A stretch of 64,000 bases of DNA from Oculina patagonica. Lineage: Eukaryota. The notes beneath the pieces were generated by a model. The model was not told the origin of the DNA. It saw nothing but the letters and a program-made list of their open reading frames with translations, and did not search any database. Positions 268 to 22,800 of this stretch are shown here, piece after piece. The translations under genes were made by a program, and so were the position numbers. The DNA is taken from assembly GCF_052425735.1 (NCBI RefSeq), contig NC_135764.1:32922001-32986000 (forward strand), read 5' to 3'. Numbering within the stretch: position 1 is the stretch's first letter; each line of letters begins with the position of its first letter.

Positions 268-3200
268 ATTTGTACTGGCAAACCGGTAAGTCGAGTCTTT
301 TGGCCTATTGGTTTTGTAAATGTCAATTACTATAAATATTCCTGAAATAAAGTTATTTGTTCAGGAAGGAAGAAGGTCTGTGAACTAGAAAACAGCGAAA
401 TGTTAAGATTGTAATTTAAGATTAGAACTGATTTGTTTTGTGCTACTAAATGCGCCGCAGTGAGCATAGAATAGATGGTATTTTGGAGCATTCAGTTTTT
501 GTTTTACTAAGTATTTTTCATGCATCACACTGTAGGTTGGCTAAACGCATTTTCTGGATTGGAATAGCAAACTTTGTTCTTTCTCCTTTCATTATTATTT
601 GGGTTATTTTGTATTCATTCTTCACTTATGCTGAGGTAGGTGTAATTTCTTTGAAATATTTGTTCTGTAACATGTAGACTTGATAGGTATCCGAACTATG
701 AACCTAAACTCTTGATTTAAAGCAGCCTGAAAACGGCTAGCAACAAAGAAAAATATCATTGAAAATAATTGGTAGTGTTTCCTGACGTTGCAAGCTGTGC
801 GATTACATTTTAGAACATTTAAATTGTGTTGTGCAACAGTGCAACATAAAATTTAAATTAGAGTCATATCTGACCAATCATGGCTGTCGACAAACCCAAA
901 TACTGCACTGAACCAATCAAAAGTCACAGCAAAAACCTGCAACGGATGCTAAGCGCGGGAAATCGCACTGGAAGCCAAATCACGAGTTGTTTGACTTTGT
1001 TCCTGATAAACTGGCTGAATAAAAAAATAGGGGAATATTTTGTTCACTATAAGCAGTCCCTCTTTCTTCTTAGTTCGTTGAGCGTGAAGCAAAGTAAAGC
1101 GCTCGTGGAAAAATGTCCATGGGAAATCTGTGGGACAGACGCGCATCTATCCCTCAGATTTCCCCAGGCCATTTTTCCACCCCCACTCTTTTTCCGTTTT
1201 ATGGTAGACGGACTAAGAAAAAAGAGGGACTGCTCGTACTCAATATATTTTGTGATTGGTTAAATCAAATTGCATGAGTTTTGCGTGCTTGTCTTATGTT
1301 CCTCACACTGTATTTTTTTGTCTGTAGATGGTGAAAAGAGAACCTGATACTTTTGGAGCACGCAAATGGTAAGAGTTCTTACTTGTGTAGTAAGCTATAA
1401 AATAGGCATTCAAGTCTCTTTGGAAGCAAAAGATGTTGCTATTTTGGAGGGTATAATGTCTTATGATTGCCCGTGTTGCTACACAACAAGAGCTATTAAT
1501 ATCGTTTTCTGAGGCGGCTCGTGGGAAATTTGAAAACCTTGACTCCCAACAATTTGTTTTGCATCTTTTCGACGAACCTCTCAAAGAAAACCAACTGACT
1601 GTATTATTGACATTTTACAGGTCCTCCTATGGCAGACTGTTTTTTCGACATTTTAATGAATTGGACCACGAACTCCAGGCAAGGTAAGTGAAAAAAATGC
1701 ATCGTTATTACAAGAACTGATAGTTGGGTGGTTGAATTTACCAGCCAATAACTAATTTGTCGAAATTTGACCAATAATCGAACGTATTGAAACGGGTGTA
1801 GAAACCTCGTTTCCTCTCAGTTCTTATATTTTTTTTCCTTTCACGCGACGTTTTAACCTATTTCTATATTTTTTCTTGCTTTCCAGATTGAGTAGAGCGT
1901 ACGAACCAGCATCCAAATACATGAATCTTTTCGTCTCTCCTTTCATGGCCATCATAGCCAAGTAAGTTTTTTCGTGCTTGTTCGTACAGTCAAGTTTCGT
2001 TTTCCGGAGATCCTCGAGAAGCACCCGAAGAGTTCCTGTGTCTACCTGTCCAATCAAAAAAGATAGGTCGAGCACTCGAAAGATGTTGCGTCAGCTTGTC
2101 GGGTTTAGGTAACGTCATGTTGCTTGGCAAACTCATTCACAAAAATAGCGGGCTCATACAGCCTAGTCTTGGAAGTGGAAAAAACGTGCAAATAAGAGAA
2201 GATAAACCTCGTTTTTTTTTTCAAGGCCATCCCAATAAAATGTTTCGTTTCCCATCGCCCGACCGACCCATTTTAGACCAATTAGATCGTATTCAACGAA
2301 ACGTTTTATTGAGATGGCCCTGAAGCGCTTTAGAAATCCTCGAGTTACAACTAACTGAACAAATTTAATATGGAGCATAAAATAGCGAATCTGTAAATAT
2401 TTTGGAGAAAGTGTAATACATCAATGTTGTTAATATTCCGCAGGAACTTGGCATTTTTTGCTGGAGCACTGTTCGCTGTGTTGACGATATTTACACTCCT
2501 GGACAGGGATGTTCTCCTAGCGGAACACGTGCTCACTGCTATAGCAATATTAGGTGAGGTCAGAGAGATCGAAGTACAAGTATAAACTACTACTTTACAC
2601 CCACCCCCTGATGGGATGCTAGTCCATCAGAGGTTATTCCCGACATTTAGTTAGTGTTTTGCTCCATTTTATACTACAGGGACAGTGCAATATTTGAATG
2701 CTCGGCCCCATTAGCACTTGTGCTACGACCGAGGGTAAACAAATGTCATTTTCTTTTCTTTTTACTGTACGAGTCGTGTCTCGCGCAAGAACAATGGCGG
2801 CCAGGCTCCTACAAGAGCCTTTCGATTCTCAAAGCGAGCGTAAATCACTTACATTTTGTTATTGCGCTTGTTTTTTTCAGGTTTAATAATACGAGGATGT
2901 TACATATTTGTACCTGACGAGGTTGGTTTATTATTTTCGTTGCATTCAAAATGGGCAGTGACCATTGTAGAAAGAAAACAAATTACTTTAAGAACTTATT
3001 AAATTATGCTAGAGCGGTTTTCACTTGAGTGTCGAAAGTAAATTGCGTTTGCTTTGGTTTTGCATTACTACGCTTAGTGATTGGCTTAAAAATCTCGCGC
3101 CACTTTCTCAGCCAATCAGGAGTAAAACCAAAACCAATCGTGACTCGCTCGCGCACGTTTTCCCGCGCTTCGTGCCAGTTACATGTATTTGCCTCGAGTT

Positions 3201-6044
3201 TTGATTGGTTCACTGGATTGTCTGTATCCTTTGTGATTGGCTAGAGTAATTACTTTGGTTTTGGTTTTACGACACTCAATATTGAAAATTGCTCTAAAAA
3301 CTGAGCAAAACAGGTAGCTGGTGCCAAGCGCGGGAAAACCTACGTAAGCAAAGTCAAGAAGTCAAGATTGATTTTGTTCACTTTAGACAGTCAACTAAAA
3401 ACCACCTTATCTCACTTTTTAAATATTTTTTTAGAATACTGTATGGGACCCTGAACAACTGTTAAAGCAAATTGTGTCCCATACGCATTATATTCCTGAT
3501 TCGTGGAAAGGAAAGGCGCACACCAGAGAGGTTTGTAATAGCTTTGCATTTGTTCAATAAACGAGATACAAATAGCGCATAGTAAAATGCAATGTTGATC
3601 TCATCAGCTGCATGCTGCACATAATCATTTTAACCATCATTTAAAAAACAAACGCAAACACCGTATTTTCTCAATTAAACGCCCCCGGTGTTTATTTCAA
3701 GCTTGCTCATCTGAGAAAATCCACAGCCTCCATGAGGCGCCGGGTGGGGCGAGTGCTTTTACCGAGTTTGCTCCTCTGTCTTCAGTTGTATTGTATCTTA
3801 GTGCCTTACTAACTTAGTAATTCATTATCAATTCTCTTTCCAATGTTGTACAATGTACTTTTCAAATTGTTTTGTCAGGTGCGACAAAAATTTTCTCAAG
3901 TGTTTCAGTACAAAGCGGTAAGTTGATGCATTTATAAAGCTGGCGTCTTTAATGTGCTTAAGTTTAGGTTGAGATCCATCCTGGGCAAAGATTGTTGTTT
4001 TTTATGTATTTTAAATTTGAACGTTTGAACGTTTGAACATTTCCACGCTTATTGTCTTTCTGTTATTGATGTTGTGATAGGAATACGTGATTCAGGAGCT
4101 ATTCAGTCCTATCGTGACGCCCTTCCTTCTGTGTTTTAATCTGCGCTACAAATCTCTCGACATCGTGGATTTCTTCAGAAATTTCACTGTTGATGTTGTG
4201 GGTGTTGGAGATGTTTGTTCGTTTGCGCAGATGGACGTGAAAAGGCATGGAAACCCAGAGGTAAGTCCCAAGATCGAAAATGAAAACTTTTCTGTCTTTT
4301 TGACTGCTGCGCTAAACATTACTCGCGAACTTTGAGAATAATTTTGTCTATCTACATGTTCCTAATGCTTATTTCTGCTTATTTTTTAGTGGCTAACTCA
4401 AGGATTAACAGAAGCAACACAATATGAACAAGCTGAGCACGGAAAAACAGAACTGTCTCTTGTTCACTTTTCTGTAAGTGTTCATTTTAGTCTTTCTTGT
4501 TTTGTGTATTGAATGAGTTTGCCGTAAATATTAACCGCAAATTCTGCGTGATTTGCAGATAAGGAACCCGACTTGGAAACCAACAGAACAAGGCGCTCAG
4601 TTTATCAGCACAATTCGGGAAAATGGTTAGTATGAAGTTATTTGCATTACTAGTAGATTAGATTGGTTTCCAATCGAACTATTTCTATGCAATCACGCTG
4701 GGCCAACTCCAACTCTGCCCGTTAAGAAGGATGAGTTGTCTAGCGTCCCTCGCCAAGCGAACGCTCGAGTGTTAGGATCAGTCGGCAAGTCAAAGAATAG
4801 GCTAAGAGAGTGGAAATTCTCATCGTCGTTCCATGGAAACTTAACAAAAGATTACCTCGTGAATTGTAGGATAATGTAAGTGGCTTATGAAAGGCTTTTT
4901 GAATGATTTGAGGCCTTACCTTACGGGACGCTACAGATTGGAAAACTGTTGCTAAAGTTTGACGTTTCAAGGTGTTTGGTTGCCTTGTCTTTCGGTTCTT
5001 GACACGTTTTGCTTATTGTTAAGGTGACAGACTGTATTATTTTGTGTTTTAATTCTGTATAAACGTTGTTTTTACTTCAGCGGTCCAAGAAGGTCTGAAC
5101 CTGAGCCACAGCGCTGCTATGTCTGAAGCAAACTCTCTTCCGGATTACAGATCAGGCAGTGTAAGTGCTGTTTTTAATAGATATAGAGTTTGTCAAATGT
5201 TACATTTGTAAAAGGTATTCATGAATTGTTCTCTCCTCTGTGTCATACCTTCAGTTTCAAGGCTTGCCTTACATTAATCCCATGAGCCTCAGCGATCCGT
5301 CACTCACTCCACTGGGGACTACCGCTGTAACACCAAAGCAGCAGGCTCAAGCAAGGGAAATGTTCATGAATTCCAGCATGATGTATATGCACGAGGTAAG
5401 GAGATTTTACCCAGAAATCAGTTAGCCATAGTAACTCGCTGATGGGCTTTATTCCTCCATTCAATGACACAACTTTTCAAATCTGTTTCAGCTGCGAGAT
5501 CGTCAGGTTGAACAGACTGGAGCACCACGAGTTGCCAGCTTAACGACGACAACAAGACAACAGCAGCAACAGCAGCCATCAACATCCGCTCAGCTTTTTG
5601 AAGAAGAGAGCGAAACAGAACAGTCAAGGTATACAAACAGTACGCGAATTACTAGTCCCCAGCTTGCGTGCAACTTTTGTTAAGGTTGTTCACTGGATAG
5701 CCCCAGGTACATTGCGTTACGACACAAATAGTGGCTCGTGTGTGCGAAGAAGAGGTGAACTATAATTCCTGAAGCGTAACGCGCAAACAAATTTCAGGAA
5801 TAGTATTGAGCTAATGTGAATCGTGCACTATGTTGTCTCATCTTTAAGAAACAAAAAAAATATATATTCTGTATTTCTCAACGTGTGAATAACTAGGGCA
5901 AAAAGGGCGTTTGTGCTTAATTTGTAAACAGTAAACACTGGTTGGTACATGTCAAATTTTCTTTTAAAGGAATTTTGTTTTTCTTAAAATAATTTAAACT
6001 GACGTTGTATTTTGTGTTACAGGGACGACGCAGGGATTGTGTGA
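268..6044 (+). CDS. ATG9A: Autophagy-related protein 9, 3' portion; the gene starts upstream of the window. Approximate exons: 268-285, 536-635, 1329-1368, 1621-1683, 1888-1960, 2444-2553, 2881-2921, 3435-3530, 3879-3917, 4081-4260, 4390-4473, 4559-4625, 5081-5160, 5254-5395, 5492-5628, 6023-6044
   Basis: The spliced translation gives RLAKRIFWIGIANFVLSPFIIIWVILYSFFTYAE, KREPDTFGARKWSSYGRLFFRHFNELDHELQARLSRAYEPASKYMN and IQELFSPIVTPF..DIVDFFRNFTVDVVGVGDVCSFAQMDVKRHGNP. These match recalled ATG9 motifs. Junctions are GT-AG; stop TGA at 6042-6044; AATAAA near 6535. Confidence 0.95.
3010..3296. mobile_element. Palindromic MITE-like repeat in an ATG9 intron
   Basis: Imperfect terminal inverted repeats: TAGAGCGGTTTTCA..TTGAGTGTCG and CGACACTCAA..TGAAAATTGCTCTA. 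Repeated GATTGG motifs inside. Confidence 0.7.
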
Positions 6045-8515: not shown

Positions 8516-11500
8516 CTAAGCCTGTACTAATCCTGTATTTTCATCATCATCTTCAACATCATAATAAAAGTCGTCTTCAAGCATCTTTAGTCTGGAGTAG
8601 CCATAATCTTCAAATCGAATCGCTTGTTTTCTCTTTATTCGCCTGTACATATAGTTTCCCGCAATAAGAGCCATGCCGAGGCAGATGAGAACAGCAATAA
8701 CGATTCCTGCAATTTGTTTTCCCTTTGAGGAAGAACTTACAGGAGATGTAGAGGAACTTTGGGTAGTTGGTGTTAATGGGCACTGAAAATATTAAAAAAA
8801 AAAATAATGTCAACTTTAATACAATCTACTTACTTACTACTTATCCTCCGGGCCCATGAGGACTCTGAGGCCGGCCAGAAAACGCGCCATCCATCCCGGT
8901 CCGCCGCCGATGCGACAGCAGCCCCACACTAACACTACCCCAGCCGGTTCTTTCTGTCTCCACGGTTTTAATACAATCTAATGCTTCGTTATTAGGCAAA
9001 TTTACAATTAATATTTGAAGTTCACAAATGATCATAAAATATAAGTGTAATATAATATAAGGAGGCAGTGGTTTACGTGTAGGGAGCTGAGTTGTTTTGG
9101 GCGCTGATGTTGTAATCCAAAGGTCCAGGGTTTAAACCCTCCACCCTTACCACTAGCTGGATTTGTTCTCGGTCGTCCCGAGTTCAAATTCCTGACCAAT
9201 CCTCGGTCACGCTTTGTATATAGCCAACTGGTCTGCCTCCTGCTAGAGTCCTGCTACTATGTTATGACTGTTATGTACATTTCAAATATTTGTTTCCTCT
9301 GTTTCAGTGGCAGGCCTGTAAACTAGCTATCTCAAAGAGAAATGAAGCTATTAAAGTGTATGACCACTATAAAAAACATTTACACTAACAATTTTACTAC
9401 TAACTTTAAGGTGTGAGCGTGCGTAACTTGACGACTGTGTAGTTTTGAGCACGCATATGGGAAACGCTAAAGGGACGAGACGGCCACGCGAGGCCTCTTC
9501 TCGTGATCTAGTGCCCTTTTAATACACGCGCTTGAAAAACTACACAGGCGCCTGCTATGCAGGCTACAAGAAGTGCAGCAAGTTAACCTTACCTCAGGAC
9601 TTGTTGAACATGCAGTCGGCACTTTTAACTTACATCTTGAATAAACAAAAACTCCATAACTGTCATTCTGTGGTTTAAAACTAAATTGGAAAAATTAAAA
9701 AATAAAGATCATTTATTTATTTACACTTTTAAGTAAAATCAAAACGTCACATTATGCCACTGGTGGGACTGTCACAAACTTCCCAGAGTTCTATATCCTC
9801 CTTGTGCTTCAATGTAGGCATAACACTTTCCAGGATGTTATGTGTGCACAAGAAGGTAATCATGGAGACAAAAAGGAAACGTCTTACCTAGCCAAATGTA
9901 CAAATAAGAAAACCCATTTTTGGTATAATTATGGGTGTTCTCAGTAGGTATATATACATTGGTCTGGGATCCCTTTTAATGAACTGGTGTCCCATCTAAG
10001 TGTGACATGTTGTAGTGATACTATTCATTATTGCTCGCCATGGAAGAAATACCGTATTTTCTCGATTAAACGCCGGACCCCGTTTAAACGCCGGCCTCGT
10101 ATAACCGCCGGGTCAAATTTTTTTTTTTTTATTTAAACGCCGGGGGGGTTGTTTGTGGCCCGCGGTTTTTTTTTTGTTGATCATATAATTAATTATTTTT
10201 TTTTTTTTTACATTTTTTTAACCTAAATTATTCTTTTTTTTATTTTTTTTTGATATTCCTTTTTCCGGGGGCTTTTGGGGGGAAAAAAAAAAAAAATTCT
10301 AACCCCTCAAAGAAGGGAAAAAAAAAAAAATATAAAAAAATTGAGAAGATTGTAGCCCCCCCCCCAACCCAAGTATTGGGGGGGTTTATTATAGCTGAAC
10401 CTCTACTCAGTGTCTGATGATTACACATATATTAAAGAACAAATAAAAGGTTTCTTTTAAAGACAATGTCCAGCACTGACCACAAGAGAGCCAGGGCAAC
10501 TTATGGGAGGTGTCTGATAGGAGACATTTGATCCCGTAAGTTTTTTTATTCAGTAGACAAAAGATATTTACCAACCTGTAACAATCCAAAATGTTGGCAA
10601 CTGACCCAATGCAGCATCCAAGGTTATTATAAAAATCCCACACATCCTAAATGAAAAAAAGGGAACAATATTTTAGACTTGAACACCTTTTAATAAAATA
10701 AAGTACCAATAAAAGGACAAGGATAAGAACGTCCTGATGATCTGTAGTTGAACCTCCTCTAGTGTGGCCCCTTTTCTACCACAACCGGGATTTTTTGCCC
10801 CGACCATGCACTGATCCATACACTTAACTCTTATGTAAACCTCCACGTAATGTTCAGCCACAGGGTTGCCTTTGTAGAATTTTGTCTTTATGTACACATT
10901 TAAATGAGAGGTACATTGTATCTGCTATAATATATAACACTGGCTGGATATAGGAAAGAAAATGACAGCAGAACACAGAATGTTCAGGACATGACTTGAT
11001 GTCATCTTTGTTCAGCTCCTCACACTTCTTACAACAGAGTCACAATGCCATTTTGAATGTTTTCACTTTGCAACTAAAATGCAACAGCATTCTGGAATAT
11101 GTTGGCAAAGTGTTTGGGACTTTGGGTTATCAAATTTATTTGTCCCATGCATAACCTAATAAATCCCAAGAGTGACCAACATCAAATTTCTCGTAAATAA
11201 TAAAGATGGTAAATTTTAAGCTCGGTAATAAATAATAAATATAAGATGTTCAACATGACACAAGCATGGGACAAAGAAAAATTCTTAGTCCCCGACAGGA
11301 ATCGAACCCATGGCCTCCCAGAAACCGGTTGGGCGCTCTAACCAACTGAGCTACGAGAGACTCGTTGTGAGCTGCGACATTGCAGAACCTAGCAGTGTGC
11401 AGGACGCGTGTCACATATCAACCTAGTAAATGGCCCAGCTCACAACGAGTCTCTCGTAGCTCAGTTGGTTAGAGTGCCCAACCGGTATCTGGGAGGCCAT

Positions 11501-13672
11501 GGGTTCCATTCCCGTCGGGGACTCAGAATTTTTCTTTGTCCCATGCTTGTGTCATGTTGAACATCTTATATTTATTATCAAATTTCTCCTCCCACTAGCA
11601 ATACTTAATTAAGAGAAAAGGTTATGAGAATTAAAAAATCATCACCAGAGGGAGATTGCTTTGTTCTTTTAACAAATTCTCCCAACTAATAGCATAAGAA
11701 AATGTGTGCAGATCAGTCAGGAGAATTTGTACATGGATATTGAAGCTTACCTGGTGGCAATTGCTAGAACACATATTGTCCTTTATATTCTTGGCAACAT
11801 CACACACCTGCAACAGAAAATATATATACTGGTAACTTCAAATATCACAGGATTTAGAAATTATGGTAGTCTAGAATAAAATGGAATTGCCTTATAATTG
11901 TGGTGAATTCCTTATGTACAACACTGAGTCACCTAAGCAAATGACAAATTATCCCTTAACAACAATATTGTTAGTCAAGGAAAAAGTACTAGACCAGTTG
12001 ATAGCAAAATCCCACCAAAGTTTTCAGATGTTTATAAGTTAAACAGTAAGCTCCCCCAGACATAATATCATCTTAATAATATTTCTCAACTTTCTCTTTA
12101 TGCATTACATTACCTGTATACTTGAATTTGAATTCTTCAGTAGTCCATTAACAAACTTGTCAGCGCATGAGGATTTATCTTGCTCAATACACAGTGACTT
12201 GAGAACTTCATTCACAAAATGGACATACATTCTGTCACTTTCCTAGACCAAGTTCAAATAAATAGGTTTATGTGCGAAACTAACAGTGAAAATGGAGAAG
12301 CATAGAAGAAAAGCAGACCATATTAAGTTAAGATTACTAAACTGTTCCATGCATTGTCACTGATCAACAGCCACTACATAAGTAACAACATCCATGCAAA
12401 TCCCTTCCATGCAAAACCACTACTGGCAACTATTATAGCCACAGCTGAGTATATCCCAGCAAACTAAGCCAGCTAAATTTACCTAACCAGGGTAGCTTGT
12501 CTAATGTATTCAGGCCCTTAAATATAGTTTCAAGGTTTTGATTCTCTATTTATCAGGGGGGAGGGAACTCCCATATAAAAGTATCAGGAATGCTTGCTGT
12601 AAATTTACAGCAACACCCTTAAATATTCCAATCCAATTTGAGTGGTTTGGTTCAAGTGAATTTTTACCCATAAGTGTGTAAGATGTAACTTTAACGTGCA
12701 ACAAATAAGTTGTCTGCTAACGGTTTCTGACACAGCTAAATGGGGAAAGATTTGTTGTGCCAAGTGTTTCCGCAACAATGTTAGCAAGCTCATTCCCAGG
12801 GTCTCTCCTCCCCCCCCTCCCCCCCCCAAGATCAGATCCAGCGAGAGCTCTGGGGGGCGAGGAGAAAGAGGTTGCAATGTTAGCATTATCGTTTTTGTTT
12901 TGTTATTTGTGTTTTTTTGTCTGGGTCATGTCTCTTGGCTGGTAAGTAGCTGTGTTACCTATCACAAAAGGACTGTACAATTCTTTCACCACTTAGCTTG
13001 CAGGAAAAAGAGTTCAGAAGTAATTGTACTTTTCTGCAGCAAGAAAATGTTTCTGAAGCACATTTTCTCAGACAACTTATTTGTGTCATATTGTCATATT
13101 CTCCACGACAAGCACAGCCATAATATCAAATTCCCTCCAGGCAAGGCACAGGGAACCCAACGCCCAGGAAACCCACCATGTACTCAACGTTTTGATGTGA
13201 CTGGTAGACAACATTTGATTACCTTTACGGCTGATTGTCCTGAATGAATGCACCTGTCGACAACAGATTGCATTGTTTTCCAGCATTGCTTTTTGCACAA
13301 GTTCCTCACTGTATTCTGCACTTTTTTAAACCATCCTTTCAAAATCAAATCTGATTTCACTGTTTTATAAAAACAATTATAACTTCCACTGGGGCAGCTT
13401 CCTGACAACAGTTTAAGTTTCGCAAATTCATTTGCAGATGTAGAAGATATAAGGTTAGCGGCAACTGATTTGCAGTCTTGATAAGTCTTGTTCAAATCTG
13501 CACACTTCCCAAAATCCGGCGAAACTTTCAAGATGATGTCATCTTTAAAACTGATTCCATAAGGCTTCAAAAAAACACTGTAGATCTCTAATTCTTTTGA
13601 GGAATACAAGGCAAAAATAAACTTGAAAATGCACAGGTGGAGAAATAAACCAATAAAAGTAATGTTCTTCAT
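8516..13672 (-). CDS. Uncharacterised Cys-rich single-pass (type I) membrane protein, 353 aa. Exons: 13672-13223, 12242-12114, 11807-11751, 10646-10576, 9680-9593, 8782-8516
   Basis: Six GT-AG exons join in frame (1062 nt). The protein has an N-terminal hydrophobic signal, about 18 ectodomain Cys, a Ser/Thr stalk, TM IAGIVIAVLICLGMALIAGNYMY, a basic stop-transfer RRIKRK, and the tail FEDYGYSRLKMLEDDFYYDVEDDDENTGLVQA*. Confidence 0.85.
8826..8968 (-). mobile_element. 5'-truncated 3' end of an RTE-like non-LTR retrotransposon
   Basis: The minus strand encodes a decayed TVETER..G....AA...A.DRDGWR, resembling an RTE ORF C-terminus, with stops and frameshifts. It is followed by a TAAGTAGTAAGTAAGTAG tandem tail. 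Confidence 0.6.
9060..9260 (+). mobile_element. tRNA-derived SINE (decayed)
   Basis: GGAGGCAGTGG head with a degenerate B box (GGTTTAAACC), then CACTAGCTGGATTTGTTCTCGGT..CCCGAGTTCAAA..AGCCAACTGGTCTGCCTCC. Confidence 0.65.
11193..11576. mobile_element. Inverted twin tRNA-derived SINE insertion with a 12-bp target-site duplication
   Basis: Two 141-bp inverted arms (11234-11374 and 11436-11576), each with A/B boxes. They are flanked by ATCAAATTTCTC at 11181-11192 and 11577-11588. Confidence 0.85.
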
Positions 13673-13853: not shown

Positions 13854-16800
13854 ATGGATCAGTTTCAAGGCAAGAGAGACGTTCAGGTACATTGATTCCA
13901 TGTTTTTGCAATTAAATTCTGTTGCCTTCTAAGGAAGTAATATCTTTTTTGTATAAATTTGCCAACGTGCATATTTTACAGTTTCCGTCATTTGACTCCT
14001 TTCTAGCCTATGACGATGAGTTATAAAAGCTTTACTAATTTTAAAACCTGAATGAATGAAAATTAGACGATATAAGTTTATAAAAACCAGTTTTTCCGCC
14101 CATCGTAGTCAATCAATATCAATAGATATTAATCACCTGGCATTATTCAACGAAGTATTGTTATGATGGGCCATTCCATTTTATATCCATCCCCCCCCCC
14201 CCCCCTATTGATGAGGTAAGTCAATATTTACCCCCTAAGAAAAAAAGATCAAAGTGCCGACATGATACCCCCCCTTCAGAAATAACCCAGGTTTTTCAAA
14301 GCCCTTCAGAAAAAAAGGCAACTTTTCCGTAACCCCTTCAAAAATCTTTGAAAGATCAAAGAATGCCGACAGGGCTACCCCCTCAGAAATGACTTTCAAA
14401 GCCCTTTTCAGAAAATCTCATCTATAGGGGGTGTATGGATATAAAATGGAATGGCCCTATTAGATTAATGATTAATCAGATTAGAGCATTTTTCCTGGAA
14501 CTAAAGCACTGTTTTCATCTTGCTACAGGTCCAAGGAACAAATGATCGTGCTACATTAAGCAAGTTCTCCACTGTGACACAAGGATACTATGAAGACAAG
14601 TTCCTCCAGTATTTTGTCTCCAAAGCTTCTAGAAGAGCACCTATTATTCATAGGTTAGTGGAGATCAATAATAACTAATATTATTGGTATTTAATTAATA
14701 TTAACTTAATATTGACTCATTCCAATAATTAAATTGTTGTATAATTACCGGTAACTGAATGTCAATTTCAGCTAGGATATAAGCAAACTTAATTGATTAT
14801 CACCACGGGTAGGCAACTCTTACAAGGAAACGGTCAGTAATACATAAAATCTCCCCGTATATTCTGGCACATTTCCCCCTGGGAAAGAAAATTATAGTCC
14901 CCCATGGAGTAACAGGTACAGTCCTCTCCCTGTGTATAAGTTCTGATATCTACCCTGTTGCAGGTCATATTACATAAGGACCAAGGCAATTCATTATATG
15001 GTGAAAGGATTTCTACGGAGCCTAAGGCTTAAAAGTTCTCACAAACAGGTATATATAAGGCCATTTTCATTTTATTAAGTTCAAATATGTGACAGTCTCT
15101 AGGGATGTAGGTTGAAGCTGGTCATCACAAAAAAAACTAAATGTGACAACTTCTTTTTTTTTTAAAAAAAAAAAAGAAAGAATATTTATTTAGGTATGGA
15201 GTAGTTTAGGGTCACCCACATCTGCTGCACCTTGACATTTCATGGCCACTGCACAGGTGGCCCAATAGCTAAGAGAGTTTGAATTTGGTGTAAGTGAATG
15301 GCCCATGCTCAATCCAAATTCACATTACTTTTCTAAGATATTGGATGATACCATTAGTTGGTAAAGGGGGGGGAGGCTTTTTCTCCAACTATACCAGCCA
15401 GTTATGAAATTTTGCTCAAAAATTGTCAAATACTTAGTAAATGGGATAAAAAAATGTTTGAAAGATTTCTTGAGTTGTGCAGCACATTTCAGAGATATGT
15501 ACAAAGTCATGCCCTGCTTCAATGGTATATTTTTATCTGACATTTTAATCTCTGTCAATTTCTTCATCTTAGATTGTTTCTCTGGGAGCAGGATTTGACA
15601 CACTTTTCTTTTCACTTGTCAGTGAAGGTCTTTTGAAAGACACAAAATATTTTGAGGTAAGCTACCACTGCCATCGTACAGTAGAATCACATGTCTGGTA
15701 ATAATTTTGAATTTACATTTAGTTGATATCTCTTCTTCATCTGATACTATAAATTTACTTTTAATAATAATATCCACAGGTTGATTTTCCAGAGGTTGTC
15801 AAACAGAAAGCTTCTTTAATTCTACAACACAAAGAATTATCCCAAGCACTTGGAACAATCACTTCAAGAAATGAAGAGTGGCTCGGGGGAGGTGAGTAAC
15901 TCATCTCCTCTCCCTCCTGCCCCTTCCTCCCTCCCCTCTCAGATTCTCTTCTTTTCTCCTCTCCTCTCCTTGCCTTATCCCTCCCCTCCCCTCCTAATGG
16001 TTGAAAACTAATCTTGTTCCCAGATCTCTTGTGTCTCCTGGTTCTCCGGTTTTATCTCCCTCCACAAAAACCAACACTCCAAATTCCAATTGGACCTTGG
16101 ATGCACGTACACGTCTTAACAAACTCCTGAGCTCTTTTGGTCACATGGGTAAATAAATAACATTTACATTTTACATTAACAAGATGAGTCGAAATTAGTT
16201 AAAAACTGCTTGAGAGAAAAACTAAGTCATGTACCAGTGAGTTTATGTTATTACACTGCTGCTATTTATTGATGTAACCTTAATGAAGTTGATTTGTAAT
16301 GAATTTGGCTTGCTTTGTTCTAATGAACAGGTATTGACAGTGAGAAGTACTCTCTACTGGGATGCAACCTGAAGAATCGACCAGCACTAGAGAGCAGCCT
16401 ACAGAAATGTGGACTAAATACCTCATTACCTACTCTGCTACTGTCTGAAGTTGTGCTGACATATATGGACCCTCCACAAAGGTATCCACAGACTGTTCCA
16501 TTTCACTTAAACAGCAGAACATATGTAAAATAAGAGAGATTTATTATATAGAGAGGGAGACATGGTGGACAAATAGTTAGCGTGCTGGACTCAGGATTGA
16601 GTGGTCTGGGTTGGGGCCCTGGCCGGGGTCTTTGCATTGTGTTCTTGGGCAAGACACTTTACTCTCACAGTGCCTCTCTCCACCCAGGTGTATGTAATGA
16701 ATTTATTGCTGCGAGGAAACCCTGTGATGGACTAGCATCCCATCCAGAGGGAAGAAGAAATACTCCTAGGTTCTTCATGCTACTGAAACCAGGATAAGCT

Positions 16801-19800
16801 CCGACCTGATGGGCCACTAGGCACGAACACAGACTTTACCCTTTTCTATAATATGGAATAATTAAATAAATGCTAATTTTAAGAATTTGGTGCCACATCA
16901 AGACAATACCCCCTTGTTGATGATTTCCTTTATTCTCATCACCTGTCTGCTTGACAAAGTATTCATATTGTAAGGAGAGATAAGACGTTGATCACTGTGT
17001 AATTTTCTGGTTCTTACATGAAGTTCAACAGCCATAATTGGATGGGCGGCACAGTTCTTCACATCTGCAATGTTTGTAATGTTTGAGCAGGTGAGTGAAT
17101 GAAGGATCTGTTATGTTTAGCAAGCTGTTTACTGCATAGTTTCGCAGTTTTGCGCCATCTTGTATGGAGGGGCATGTGTTTTAGAATACAGTGTTAAAAA
17201 TATCCTTTCTCATCAAAATTTAAAACTGTAAATGTGCTGGGAAGCCTGCATTCGCCCTTTTTTAGTTTCCTGTATAATTGTCAGCAACACAGAAAAGTTG
17301 AATATAAGCTTAAAGCAGTTGCTCTTTTCTCTCAAGCAAGTTAGCAGGCTGCTCGTGCTCAGACTTGCTCCAAGCTCGTGCAAATGTGGGACTGTTTTAT
17401 TTGTAGGTTACAATACTTTTAATAGTAAGATATGGCCTCACATGTGTACGAATATGTACAGTTATTTCGATCGCAAAAATCTTTTATATTGTCAAAGAAA
17501 TCTATTTAACATTTAAAATAAATTCGTTTTTGTTGTCTCTAGGTATCCCCTTGTGACCCATTTGGAATAAAAATGTAAGTACATAAAGTTGTAATTTGAA
17601 AACAGTTAGATCCTTAATCGACTCTTTTTTAGCTTTGTACGTAGAGGCATTATTTTGGTGTTATTTAAATTTCGCGATCGCAACTCCACGCCATGCGAAG
17701 GCAGTTTTCAATTACTTGGTGTTCTTGGTTTGAGTTTTTTACTAGATATCGTCTTTGTCGCCGCAAAAACAAATTAGCTGCGAGCAGTGCCAGTAATTGT
17801 AATAATCGCTTGCGGTAAAATATGTTATGTACATTCCCTCATAAGGCATTTAATACATAGACAACATAAAAATAAAATGATGTACTTTTCGATCTCTCGA
17901 ACAAAGGGTCTGTCTGAAGCTTAGCAAGGAACAAACGGTGTGTTTGTGGCGTAATATCTTTGTCAAACAAAGAATGTCCATTTCCGATATTTTCTTATTT
18001 TATTTTTGTTTTCAGAGTTGTCTTTGTCGGTCTTTGTCATATTGATCACCGTTTCTTTGTTTAAAGCAAGACAAGCAAATAAAAAAAGGAAGAACTAATG
18101 AGTTTTTCTGTGTACAGCTTGCCACTGGAACTGCTCACTTAATTGAAATTGCTAGCCACATGGAAAGACTGTTCAGGCATAATAACTTCCAGCGAAAACT
18201 GGGCAAAGTGAGCTTGGCAGCAACCCACTTCTTTTTTTAAATTGTCTTACGTTATTTTTGACGGTATCGTTTTATGCTTTTGTTTGTTTTGTTCTTTTTT
18301 TTTTTTCAATTCTCTGAAATAATGGTACAGGTTCAGATCTCTACGCTTATGAGAAAAAAAAAACTTCGCCTTTCTTCTAACTGGAACATAATTCTTTGTA
18401 ACAGCTCTCTACAACTGGCCACTGATAAAATCACCCTAACGCTTGTGTTTGAATGGAGTTCATCCTTCTTTTTTTTCTTGAACCGTAGAAAACGTTCCGT
18501 CATGGAACCGCTTTAATTTTAAACAAACTGTATCAACCCATCGAAATCACTATGTTCCCCATTCCTTTCCCGAAATGTCTCCAAAACTTCGATGGTCAAA
18601 AAATTCCCCATCATACGATTTCAAAGACGTTTTTTTGCCTTGCTCTAATAGGCTTCCAACAGTTTTTGATTTAGTTTTTACAGGTTAGAATTTTTTTGTA
18701 AGTATCTCGGAACCGTTTCTGCATAACACCGTAGATCAGAGGATTAATCGCGCAACTTGCCGCGCCTGTAAAAGGCAAAATTAGGTAAACTTGACGAGCT
18801 AGACTGTATTCTCCTTGTAGTGTGTCCAGAAATTCGATTGTGAATCCAGGAGTCCAGCAAATCACAAACGCAATCAATACAGCAAAGAGAATTTTCGTGA
18901 TTTTGACCTCTTCCGCGAAGGATTTCGCATTGTCTTCGTGGAGACTAGAAGTTGCAATCTGCGTAAAATGAGAACGAACTTTGCGGAACACTTTGTAATA
19001 GCAAAATATTATGACTGGATAAGTCATAGCAATTAAAACCGAGTACGGCCCGAGGATAAGGGCTTGCTCTTTCTTGTTTCGACTCTTGCAAACGAAGCAT
19101 GCTAGTTTTCCGGGATGAAAACAAAACCTCTGCGATACAAATGGAATTACGAACACTCCAGAAAAGATGGCACATGCTGCGATAGACAGAAGTACGCAAT
19201 TCCGTGTGTAGGCCTTTTGATAGATGTTGACCGACCGGATCATTTTTACATAACGATTTAGTGCGATAAGCGTAAAAGTCAGCACCGAGAAGCACGCAAA
19301 GTAATAAGTTACGATGCCTTGTATCTGACAAAGCGCATCACCAAACGGCCATCTTCCAAGAATCACCACAGCTAAACCCATAGGAACACAAAGAACAGTC
19401 AATATTAAGTCCGACATCGCTAATGCCACAATATAGTAGTTCTGAATTTTACGAAGCGCCCGACATCTGTAGATCGCCAAGCAAAGAATTATATTTCCTA
19501 TCGTGGCCAATATTACGATGATAAAGGCGCCAGTAGTCTCCGCAGCAATCATCCATGTTTCTCTGTTTCCGAGTGATTCCTCGATGCTTCTTTTTCTGTC
19601 TAAAGTGTCAGGCATTCTGTTGATTAAAAAGAATCTGTTTCTGTTGCTATTTTCAAATTGCAATGAATAGATTTCATATCCCCATCTGCTCTTTAGGTCT
19701 CAATTTACTTACAATATTTGTTTTTAAGGAGGCAACCCATATTGAGATCGCCGTAACATGACACTTTATTTGCAGTTTTTCATAAGTTCTTAATTTAATT

Positions 19801-22800
19801 TCTAATACCCAGAGCATACTAATTAGTCGTATTTAGACAGCTGTCTTGCTAGAATTTAATTTCAAAGAAGCGAAGATGTCAAACACTAGTTATAATTGCG
19901 CATTAAAAATTGAACTGCAAAATTTTAACGTTAAAACTCCATTTCCTTAACTGACTAATTGCTGGCAGATATTTCCGCAATTGGCGAAAGAACTATTTCC
20001 CAGCCTGTCTTAATCTTACTATTTACTAAACGACTATCATTTAATTTTTGCAGTCTCGGGGAACGAAGAAAAAAATCGCGCCGGCATTTGTGATTTTCTA
20101 GCCTCTGGGTCTTTAGACTGTCCACAGCTCTCTATTTTTCGTGTTTTTTCGATCGATGAGCGCGCGATGAGAATGCCGAAAGAACTGGACGCCGGCGCAA
20201 AATGTTTGCTTTTTTGCTTTTTTGCGTTGAAAAATCGAGAGGCTGTGGACAGTTTACTGGGTCTTGTGCGTGACCGATTTTTTTAAAATTTGAACTAGCG
20301 AATGTTTCGTGGAGAAACTGCGGTTGTGGGTTGTAAGGATATGCGATCGATTTTGTGAAGTCTCGCTTTTTGTACCCCCTTTCATGTTAGCTGCCTACGT
20401 TTTTCTCAGTGGTTAATTTTTATTCTCAATTTTGCTATTAGAAACGGCCTATCCCTAATTATTTTTCATATTTGTTTTGGTGTTTACACACTCACAAGCA
20501 AGGGACAATATTTAGTCTTTTCTCAGTAAGAGGTCTCAGCTGGGTGAACTTTTCTTGGAAGTTATCACTGGACCAGTCGGGGAAATAAGTGCCAGTTTTT
20601 CCAAATCTTTGTTGAAGCACTAAAGAATTTCCGAATTATTTCATCCAATCAAAAACTTGCGCGAGCGCTCACGAGTACTCCGAGAGCCTTCGCGCGTGCA
20701 AATACGTTATGTTGCTTAGCAACTTCTGGGACGAAAACCGCGGGCTCAGTCACTTCTTGGAGAAGTGATGTCGCCATCAACCGGAAGTTCCAGAAAACTG
20801 CTACAAAAAAAATAAAAAAAGGAAACCAAAATAGCGAGGGTGTGCACTGCGGCTTACCTTTTTCATGTTTCTGCAGATTTTTAAATTTGTGTTTAATATT
20901 TTCGTGGCTGGTCTGACACGCATGTTTCGTCTCCGCCAAGAGACTCATCAGAGACCTTTCGGTGAAAGCTAACTCGTCGAACATCGCGTTCGAAGTCCCG
21001 CTAGCGTCGAAATGATGGTGCAATCTGGCCTTACATCGCGTAAGCATTCCCAATTGCGTAACGTGGTATAAGTATTATCACGTGTAAACAAAAAATAGTC
21101 GAGTTATATCGAATTTTATTTTTTCCCGTCATTTACGCGGCCAGAGACATGAAATTAAATTTCGCAAGGCCAAATTACGAATAACACAGTTGTGATTGCT
21201 TAATATATAATTACATAATTGGATAGTTTTAATTTCTGGGAAACACTTGGCCCAGTTGTAAAAAAGGAATAACTTAAACTGGAGGATAACTCCCGGCAGT
21301 CATCATTATTCATTGAATAAATCTATCCATCATTTAAACTACGGGGGTGGTGGGGACCCGGAGTGCAAAGGTGAGGCCGGCCCGGATAGAAACTACACCC
21401 GACTAAATGTTTCGGCCTTTACCGAAAAGATTGGACCTAGGCCCCTCCCCTGGGGCCGCCACAGCTTGCACTGTTTGTGGATCTGCAGTTCAAATGTAAT
21501 ATGATTTTAATAGTTTACATAAAATAAACCTGAAAATGGTAGAAACTGACCGACTTTTATGGTTCGCAGGATAAACCATTTTAAACATTCAGTTGGTGCA
21601 CCTCTGCATGCCACTGAAGCTTTTCCAACTCGACAAAGTCAAATCCAGCGATTCATGGAAGAGGTTAGTTAAAAAAGATTAATATTAGTTATTTCTTATT
21701 TTTTTCCGCGATGAATGTGTTCCTTGTGTATCAGTCGGTGATAAAAAAAACTTCAGAGTAAATATTAAATAGCTTGATTTTCGGAATAAAAACGTTCGTA
21801 CTCTCTTAGCTTTACAGTTATGAAGTTTTCTTTTATTTTTTCTTACATCATTTAATATACGAACTTTCACGTCCTCTGTAGGGCTGGCCTTTAGTCCATT
21901 GTCCCACTTTGAACTTCTTCTACTACGATACGTTACCAAAGGAGGAAAAAGTTCGATTGGAAGATTTGGAACCTTTTGATGAGTTTGAGGTGTTGATTTT
22001 ACGTCCTGTTTCCTTTTTACTGAGCAATTTTGAAGTAAACAGCACATTGCTTTACAGTTAGTTTCTTAGCAAAACCTGATGCCATCGCGACCCTATCAAT
22101 CAAACTTGGCGCTAAACGTAAAGGTAGCTTGTCATTCGCCCACCTCTTCACGTATTCGCATTGTCACGCAACACTACTCTCTACTTTCGGCTCCTTCTAC
22201 CCGCAATACGGCATTCGGCCAATCACAGTCGGGCTAGAAACGTTGTGTGACGACCAAAATAACAGTTTCGAAGATGAGTCGCTAGCTGCGCTATTAGCCA
22301 GGGTTTGTTTAGACTGAATTGGTTGTGAAACAAGGCTTGCCTATTAAAGGCCCACGACTCTTGAACATTCACTGTACCTATTCCTTGTATTATTCGTCAA
22401 TAATATGAGCTGAATAAAATTATTATTATTATTATTGTACCCGGACTGTAGCATTTTCTTCTCGTCTTTTTTCTAGGAATGGCACCTGATGTGTTCACAC
22501 TACATGGTCCTCTCAGCTTTCAAAGGATCCTGCCAGGATATCAAAGATGAGCTGTTTTATCAGCAAAATGGTAAATATTTTACCAACCAGTATTGAAATT
22601 AATTTAACTCTAACTATAACGAACAATTCAACCAACCAACTAACCAACGACGAACTTTCACTTTATTTAAAGGGACACTGTCACCAGTTTCACTTCAATG
22701 AAAAACTCAAGAGCCTAAAGACATATGGAAACTACGAATAGTGGTCCAATTTTGTTAAAAATCACCATGCAAGTGTTCTGAAGCGATAAACAAGTGTTAT

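Follow-up and report, generated by a model that had tools for sequence, protein, structure and literature searches.

A probable solo copy of a hammerhead retroelement, antisense in an LCMT2/TYW4-like intron of Oculina patagonica

Introduction

Type I hammerhead ribozymes are a recurrent part of animal retroelements. In Acropora millepora, for example, more than 6000 type I hammerheads that fall into 16 families reside in retrozymes and Penelope-like elements (PMC7229834). Penelope-like elements carry their hammerheads near the 3' ends (PMC8557442; PMC4209133), and a Penelope-like origin has been proposed for the animal retrozymes as well (bioRxiv 10.64898/2026.07.22.740005). Here, we describe a type I hammerhead motif in a stretch of 64,000 nucleotides (nt) of the Oculina patagonica genome (contig NC_135764.1, positions 32,922,001 to 32,986,000), which is called the window below and in which positions are counted from the first letter. 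The motif lies on the minus strand at 20910..20956. It is likely to belong to a solo copy of roughly unit length, one of many of a non-coding hammerhead retroelement of the kind known as a non-LTR (long terminal repeat) retrozyme. The retroelement would derive from, or be mobilised by, a Penelope-like element, and the copy sits antisense within an LCMT2/TYW4-like gene, in one of its introns.

Insertions of Penelope-like elements have a recognisable style: they are strongly truncated at the 5' end, they form partial tandems as pseudo-LTRs, and they are found with an adjacent inverted and truncated copy (PMC8557442). The hammerheads of metazoan Penelope-like elements, termed min-HHR, have a helix II of 7–8 base pairs (bp) that is preceded by an unpaired base, and their helix III is minimal or missing (PMC4209133). 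About 40% of hammerheads, all three types included, are reported to have pseudoknots between stems I and II, and fast cleavage was shown to require them (PMC3088659).

The hammerhead motif

Read on the minus strand, the motif is composed as follows. Stem I is formed by the 5' strand GGUCU (20956-20952) and the 3' strand AGACC (20914-20910). Stem II, GUCUC/GAGAC (20944-20940 and 20933-20929), includes the G10.1-C11.1 pair and is capped by loop 2, UUGGCG (20939-20934). The catalytic core is made up of CUGAUGA (20951-20945), GAA (G12, A13, and A14, at 20928-20926), and C17 (20915), and stem III is a hairpin of the sequence ACA-UGCG-UGU (20925-20916). All invariant hammerhead positions are present, namely C3 to A9, G12 to A14, the A15.1-U16.1 pair (20925/20916), a C at H17, and G10.1-C11.1. 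Three helices surround the core, of which II and III end in loops and I is open, as in type I hammerheads; stems I and II are perfect over 5 bp, and stem III has 3 bp and a loop of 4 nt. The predicted cut lies between 20915 and 20914. An earlier note, made from the letters of the window, had claimed these coordinates and this cut site, together with an intact core, 5-bp stems I and II, and a minimal, near-palindromic stem III, and every one of these elements is found on the minus strand. The 10 nt of stem III are self-complementary except for two G-U wobbles, and given this self-complementarity two copies of the motif could share an extended helix III.

The motif was compared with expectation by means of our own descriptor, which allows wobble pairs and requires at least 4 bp in stems I and II and at least 3 bp in stem III. 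The descriptor matches exactly one site in the 64-kb window, which is the present motif, and no site in 300 mononucleotide shuffles. When the stem I requirement is dropped, there is still no match in 100 shuffles. A looser pattern that describes the core only is uninformative, as it has four matches in the window against 1.6 expected, with a single real motif among them. The Rfam model Hammerhead_1 (RF00163) also aligns to the motif from end to end, with a score that is considered further below. The motif is complete, and its origin by chance is not expected.

A transcribed multi-copy repeat

The hammerhead is part of a repeat that is present in many copies and is transcribed. Contigs of two RNA runs (X1 and X2) and raw reads of two more runs were mapped to positions 18600-22100 of the window. 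The word depth in the RNA runs is ~340–2300 over 20823-21056, against 0–10 in unique intron sequence. The RNA contigs over 20823-21056 are numerous and merely 90–99% alike, and therefore they come from many loci. The size of the unit follows from contigs in which the end of the repeat is joined to its beginning: in X1, 21065 rejoins 20900 with 18 nt in between, and in X2, 21062 rejoins 20895 with 16 nt in between. Both joints give a head-to-tail unit of 184 nt. Based on these joints, the word depth, and the identity to relatives described in the next section, about one unit of the hammerhead-bearing repeat lies at ~20882..~21065 on the minus strand. These ends are approximate, and weak similarity may reach ~21077 on one side and ~20875 on the other.

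No second copy of the unit was found in the window by BLAST (20300-21800 against the window), by pattern, or by a covariance model of the family (R1), which has one match in the window, the window sequence itself being part of the model. In contrast to the genomic dimers to multimers that serve as a criterion for retrozymes, the window copy is a single unit rather than a tandem array. It is a solo member of a tandem-forming family.

The GC content of the unit is 0.478, and its ratio of observed to expected CpG is 1.62, compared with 0.77 for the window. Such undecayed CpG is consistent with recent insertion, or with a site that is not methylated. The suggestion in the earlier note that a perfect core reflects either recent insertion or selection for activity is partly retained: the CpG content fits recent insertion, but selection is visible at the level of the family only and is not supported at this locus. 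As a separate observation, a 13-nt inverted repeat with 92% complementarity (20861-20873 and 21142-21154) brackets the unit at some distance; it may be due to chance.

Relatives of the repeat and the link to Penelope-like elements

Relatives of the repeat were obtained in one exact-pattern scan, for stem II and the core, of public metagenome contigs. The scan gave 120 loci, about 41 of which carry a repeat that is 72–87% identical to window positions 21057..20892. The sources of the ~41 related contigs are a single JGI project (Ga0126343) and a single ENA project (accessions beginning with OFE and OFHQ), and the contigs look like eukaryotic host DNA because a reverse transcriptase (RT) of a long interspersed nuclear element, with an RVT_1 domain, is present. 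The unit of the relatives is 214 nt long, and its copies are 86–100% (mostly 90–99%) identical to a reference unit from contig L063.

The relatives occur in several forms. In the solo form, the 5' starts are variable (unit positions ~98-165), and the copies end 27–61 nt beyond the cut site. The tandem form comprises 1.7–2.7 units (L063, L083, and L120), and head-to-head inverted pairs are found in L017, L033, L036, L094, L108, and L114. These insert shapes match the published style of Penelope-like elements. They are seen in the relatives; the window copy shows none of them and is simply one unit.

A further connection comes from contig L001, in which an open reading frame (ORF; 147-602) runs directly into the 214-nt unit and stays open through its hammerhead. 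The ORF scores 0.96 against animal GIY-YIG clusters in a protein feature and structure atlas. RVT_1, HTH_animal, and GIY-YIG, the components of the Penelope ORF, occur together in the structural neighbours of the highest-scoring atlas cluster, the neighbours being those of the cluster and not those of the L001 ORF. Pfam gives no match for the L001 ORF, the GIY-YIG assignment coming from the atlas, and none of the other fetched loci shares the ORF sequence. A link of the repeat family to an autonomous Penelope-like element is therefore suggestive. The junction of ORF and unit in L001 is also immediately preceded by a 10-nt stretch in which the first bases of the unit recur as their inverted complement. 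The earlier proposal that the hammerhead is of the Penelope or retrozyme type agrees with a multi-copy repeat, a 184-nt head-to-tail unit, relatives with Penelope insert shapes, and one GIY-YIG-like ORF.

The same ORF raises the question of which form of the element the window copy represents. It could be the 5'-truncated 3' end, that is, a solo pseudo-LTR, of an autonomous, ORF-bearing Penelope-like element rather than a copy of an ORF-less retrozyme. A GIY-YIG-like ORF that leads straight into the unit in L001 speaks for such an origin, as do the heavy 5' truncation of Penelope-like elements and the position of their hammerheads near the 3' ends (PMC8557442; PMC4209133). However, the window copy has ~55 nt of the unit upstream of the point at which the ORF joins in L001, in sequence that the relatives have only in the ORF-less tandem form, and because of those ~55 nt it is closer to the ORF-less (retrozyme) form than to an autonomous element that was truncated. 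Moreover, the window copy amounts to about one full unit, no RT or GIY-YIG coding remnant lies upstream of it, and the traits published for the min-HHR of metazoan Penelope-like elements are missing from the window motif (PMC4209133). An origin as a truncated autonomous element is thus unlikely.

Conservation of the fold and a candidate pseudoknot

The hammerhead of the relatives has a stem I of GUAU/AUAC, a loop 2 of UUGGCC, and a stem III of ACG-CCG-CGU, and its core, stem II, and tail CCAGCCACG are as in the window. The helices differ from those of the window copy in three places. Pair 1.2-2.2 of stem I is G-C in the window copy and U-A in the relatives, and pair 15.3-16.3 of stem III is A-U in the window copy and G-C in the relatives, both sides having changed in each case. 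A fifth pair of stem I is gained in the window copy, with G-C in place of A/C. Among 41 distinct family sequences, 91% of the cells hold standard pairs, compared with 18–43% when the partners are slid, and the hammerhead with its tail is the best conserved part of the unit. All both-side changes set the single window sequence against the rest, and the statistical support is slight, since three such pairs are also reached in 49 of 500 shuffles. With this reserve, the comparison supports the view that the fold is under selection at the family level, and the direction of the changes is as would be expected of a ribozyme kept while the family diverged.

A tertiary contact had also been proposed in the earlier note, namely a pseudoknot between loop 2 and a GCCA beyond stem I. 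This candidate partner lies at 20905..20908 on the minus strand, 1 nt 3' of stem I, and is complementary to the UGGC of loop 2 (20938-20935). UGGC and GCCA are kept in 40–41 of the 41 family sequences. The rare changes are uncompensated, and there is no covariation. The proposal therefore stands as regards complementarity and conservation, but covariation is absent within the family.

Some unrelated metagenomic type I hammerheads from the same scan share this arrangement: a 4-bp stem I is followed by a spacer of 0–3 nt and then by a stretch complementary to loop 2. In these unrelated hammerheads the letters of loop 2 and tail covary (UUGGCU/AGCCAA, GGCA/UGCC, GGCU/AGCC, and UGGC/GCCA). For the 39 parsed motifs from outside the family, permutation predicts about 5.5 loop 2/tail matches of at least 4; the observed number is 11, an excess that does not decide the matter. 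The pseudoknot would have a competitor in a stem I that is extended distally (GCUG/CAGC in the relatives, GCU/AGC in the window), as this extension overlaps GCCA by 2 nt, and it too shows no covariation. Taken as a prediction, a pseudoknot contact between loop 2 and GCCA is reasonable, and a contact of this type is already known.

One of the hammerheads of the scan deserves separate mention. In a 47-kb metagenome contig (L023:5009-5060), a type I hammerhead with a 5-bp loop 2/tail pseudoknot has a stretch of 28 nt, comprising the core, stem II, and loop 2, that is identical to that of the relatives. This identity is probably due to convergence, helped by the search pattern.

How the element may work, and points against this interpretation

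Following the mechanism described in the literature, the hammerhead of a retrozyme family would cut multimeric transcripts of tandem copies into RNA of unit length, which is 184 nt in Oculina patagonica. The unit RNA would then be circularised and reverse-transcribed into the genome by a Penelope-type enzyme with RT and GIY-YIG domains. A minus-strand transcript of the window copy, if made, would undergo a single cut, between 20915 and 20914. Because only one ribozyme is present, neither a unit nor a circle can be released from the window copy. The copy is most likely without a function for the host, and presumably neutral where it stands.

Several observations weigh against the interpretation of the motif as an active member of a Penelope-related retroelement family. 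The first concerns Rfam, to which the earlier note had pointed as a check. The alignment to RF00163 covers the full length of the motif, but with 19.6 bits (E 0.049 on 501 nt) it falls short of the gathering score of 34, and with this score applied to the whole window Rfam does not report the hammerhead but only two tRNA-like matches elsewhere. Close relatives also score below this threshold (25.3 and 20.5 bits), and for this reason RF00163 is a weak model for the present hammerhead family; it appears to penalise the short stem I. Secondly, the head-to-tail joints in the RNA contigs do not distinguish tandem DNA or tandem transcripts from circular RNA, and carry-over of DNA is possible. Thirdly, a search around the unit copy for a target-site duplication or terminal repeats returned only short, probably chance matches, and there is no RT or GIY-YIG ORF near the hammerhead site in the window. 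The Penelope link itself consists of one ORF-adjacent copy among ~41 loci, in another organism.

The remaining points bear on cleavage. Given the intact core and the three helices, the window copy is probably still able to cut. Starts or ends of reads do not pile up at 20914/20915 among the raw reads, which number only 26. In nearest-neighbour folding, a structure in which the stem I 5' strand, extended by CUG, pairs with the stem II 3' strand (-17.4 kcal/mol) is favoured over the hammerhead (-10.1 kcal/mol), and there is no excess stability compared with shuffles (z ~0). Within 20956-20929, GGUCUC (the stem I 5' strand and C3) nearly duplicates AGUCUC (the stem II 5' strand), so that an inactive pairing with GAGAC is possible; the relatives, with GUAU in stem I, do not have this near-duplicate 5' strand. 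RNA of unit length is likewise not more stable than shuffles (z +0.28 and -1.06), and a rod-like unit is unsupported. Thermodynamic folding is taken as uninformative here, because it deals poorly with three-way junctions that involve tertiary contacts.

It is also of concern that most expressed copies differ from the window at a position of the core. Position 20928 of the plus strand is C in the window, but T accounts for 83% and 70% of the depth in the two RNA runs (18 and 10 contigs), which corresponds to A at G12. G12 is the general base of the hammerhead reaction, and much of the expressed family may be catalytically dead. At the other displayed sites of the unit, no CpG-type change exceeds 35% (8 further sites are not displayed). 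The G12-to-A change looks like the mark of a derived, probably inactive subfamily that dominates expression, rather than of scattered decay. Since the relatives mostly keep G at G12, the window copy is in the ancestral, competent state. The few polyA reads over the unit all have one direction, the strandedness of the library not being established.

The locus and its genes

The plus strand of the window carries an LCMT2/TYW4-like gene, which encodes a leucine carboxyl methyltransferase domain together with Kelch repeats and has exons on both sides of the hammerhead. Its coding pieces lie at 14505-14675, at 16327-16530, and from 21882 on, and RNA contigs contain a GT..AG joint from 21661 to 21880. 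Because exons of the host gene flank the site on the plus strand, the hammerhead is intronic and antisense to the LCMT2/TYW4-like gene, and its placement in an LCMT2 intron by the earlier note is correct. On the minus strand, ~1.25 kb downstream of the hammerhead, there is an intronless ORF for a rhodopsin-type G protein-coupled receptor (GPCR; 19663..18671).

The vicinity of the GPCR ORF invites interpretations in which the ribozyme acts at this locus. In a far-reaching one, which we hold to be improbable, the element would be a Penelope-derived metazoan retrozyme with a pseudoknot of the bacterial or phage type by which a single copy could cleave efficiently as a monomer, and the intact copy in the window would sever minus-strand read-through RNA 1.25 kb upstream of the GPCR and in this way act as an insulator or create a 5' end.

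Still less probable, in our estimate, is the general idea that the ribozyme has been exapted for a local job, either in processing or insulating the 5' leader of the GPCR or in trimming antisense transcripts of the LCMT2-like intron. The hammerhead does share a strand with the GPCR ORF and precedes it by ~1.25 kb, its core is intact though most expressed family members have the G12-to-A change, and GT/AG-like sites flank 20860/20800 on the minus strand. On the other hand, no splice joint connects the ribozyme region with the GPCR, and neither RNA run has any contig depth over 19770-20003. What depth there is over the ribozyme is contributed by contigs that diverge at the unit ends, and thus by other copies, and the unit sits among other repeat fragments (20575-20781 and 20114-20253). 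Function or selection at this locus is unsupported. A ribozyme-bearing leader exon of the GPCR was considered as a candidate feature and rejected, as neither a joint nor coverage in the RNA contigs supports it.

A chance match to the hammerhead consensus in an AT-rich intron, in favour of which the Rfam score of 19.6 bits (under the gathering score of 34) and a predicted folding no better than that of shuffles could be cited, is effectively refuted by the lack of any descriptor match in 300 shuffled windows and by dozens of homologous copies elsewhere that have the motif and compensatory stem changes.

Other repeats in the window

Two of the repeat fragments near the unit have high copy number or depth of their own. 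The fragment at 20575-20781 is a separate high-copy repeat with an RNA contig depth of 3000–4800. Contigs that leave the window sequence past 20781 continue as an inverted copy of 20575-20597, which suggests an element with terminal inverted repeats, similar to a miniature inverted-repeat transposable element, whose copy in the window is without one end. The fragment at 20114-20253 is a third repeat of high depth, and several contigs skip 59–78 nt within it (20134-20231); these skips suggest copies of variable length or an internal short tandem. Both fragments are placed outside the hammerhead element because the relatives are without them.

Away from the hammerhead, positions 11240-11570 form a near-perfect fold-back, a palindrome of ~330 bp, whose arms contain tRNA-Thr(GGU)-like sequences at 11286-11362 (minus strand) and 11449-11524 (plus strand). 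This arrangement looks like two copies of a tRNA-derived element placed head to head.

Comparison with known systems

The closest described systems are the animal non-LTR retrozymes (PMC7229834), of which the A. millepora form is 220–240 nt long. The present element resembles them in that a type I hammerhead is contained in a short (170–400 nt), low-GC, non-coding unit, in the short palindromic stem III, in the tandems formed by the relatives, and in abundant RNA with head-to-tail junctions. It differs from them in the size and sequence of the unit, which is 184 nt here and 214 nt in the relatives. Unlike a retrozyme array, the window copy is a single unit, and the unit RNA has no excess of predicted structure. 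In addition, the contact of stem I with stem II is likely, by prediction, to be a Watson-Crick pseudoknot rather than a canonical loop-loop interaction. The published A. millepora clone Amil224 was considered as a member of the same family and ruled out, as its stem II (GGCC) and loop (AGAAA) differ.

The pseudo-LTR hammerheads of Penelope-like elements (PMC4209133; PMC8557442) are similar in other respects. The relatives share with them the 5'-truncated, partial-tandem, and inverted inserts, and one relative has a GIY-YIG-like ORF; helix I, of 4–5 bp, is also alike. In contrast to the min-HHR, helix II of the window motif has 5 bp, there is no bulge between A9 and G10.1, and helix III is a real hairpin of 3 bp with a 4-nt loop. 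There is also no ORF at the window locus.

A third group for comparison comprises the pseudoknot-stabilised hammerheads (PMC3088659). In common with them, loop 2 of the window motif matches the tail over four Watson-Crick pairs, in a geometry that is also that of the metagenomic type I hammerheads in L023, L050, L116, and L055. Those described are mostly bacterial or from phages, and the pairing in the window is, unlike theirs, conserved without covariation.

By itself, the solo copy in the window adds little, as thousands of coral type I hammerheads are already known in retrozymes and Penelope-like elements. Of modest interest is the family to which it belongs. The predicted contact between loop 2 and tail makes it a candidate for a pseudoknot-type tertiary contact in an animal hammerhead, and there is a hint that most of its expressed copies have the G12-to-A change, which the window copy does not. 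Finally, the 184/214-nt family, for which no description was found, ties tandems in the style of retrozymes to the insert shapes of Penelope-like elements and to a GIY-YIG ORF, and in doing so it supports the recent proposal of a Penelope-like origin for the animal retrozymes.

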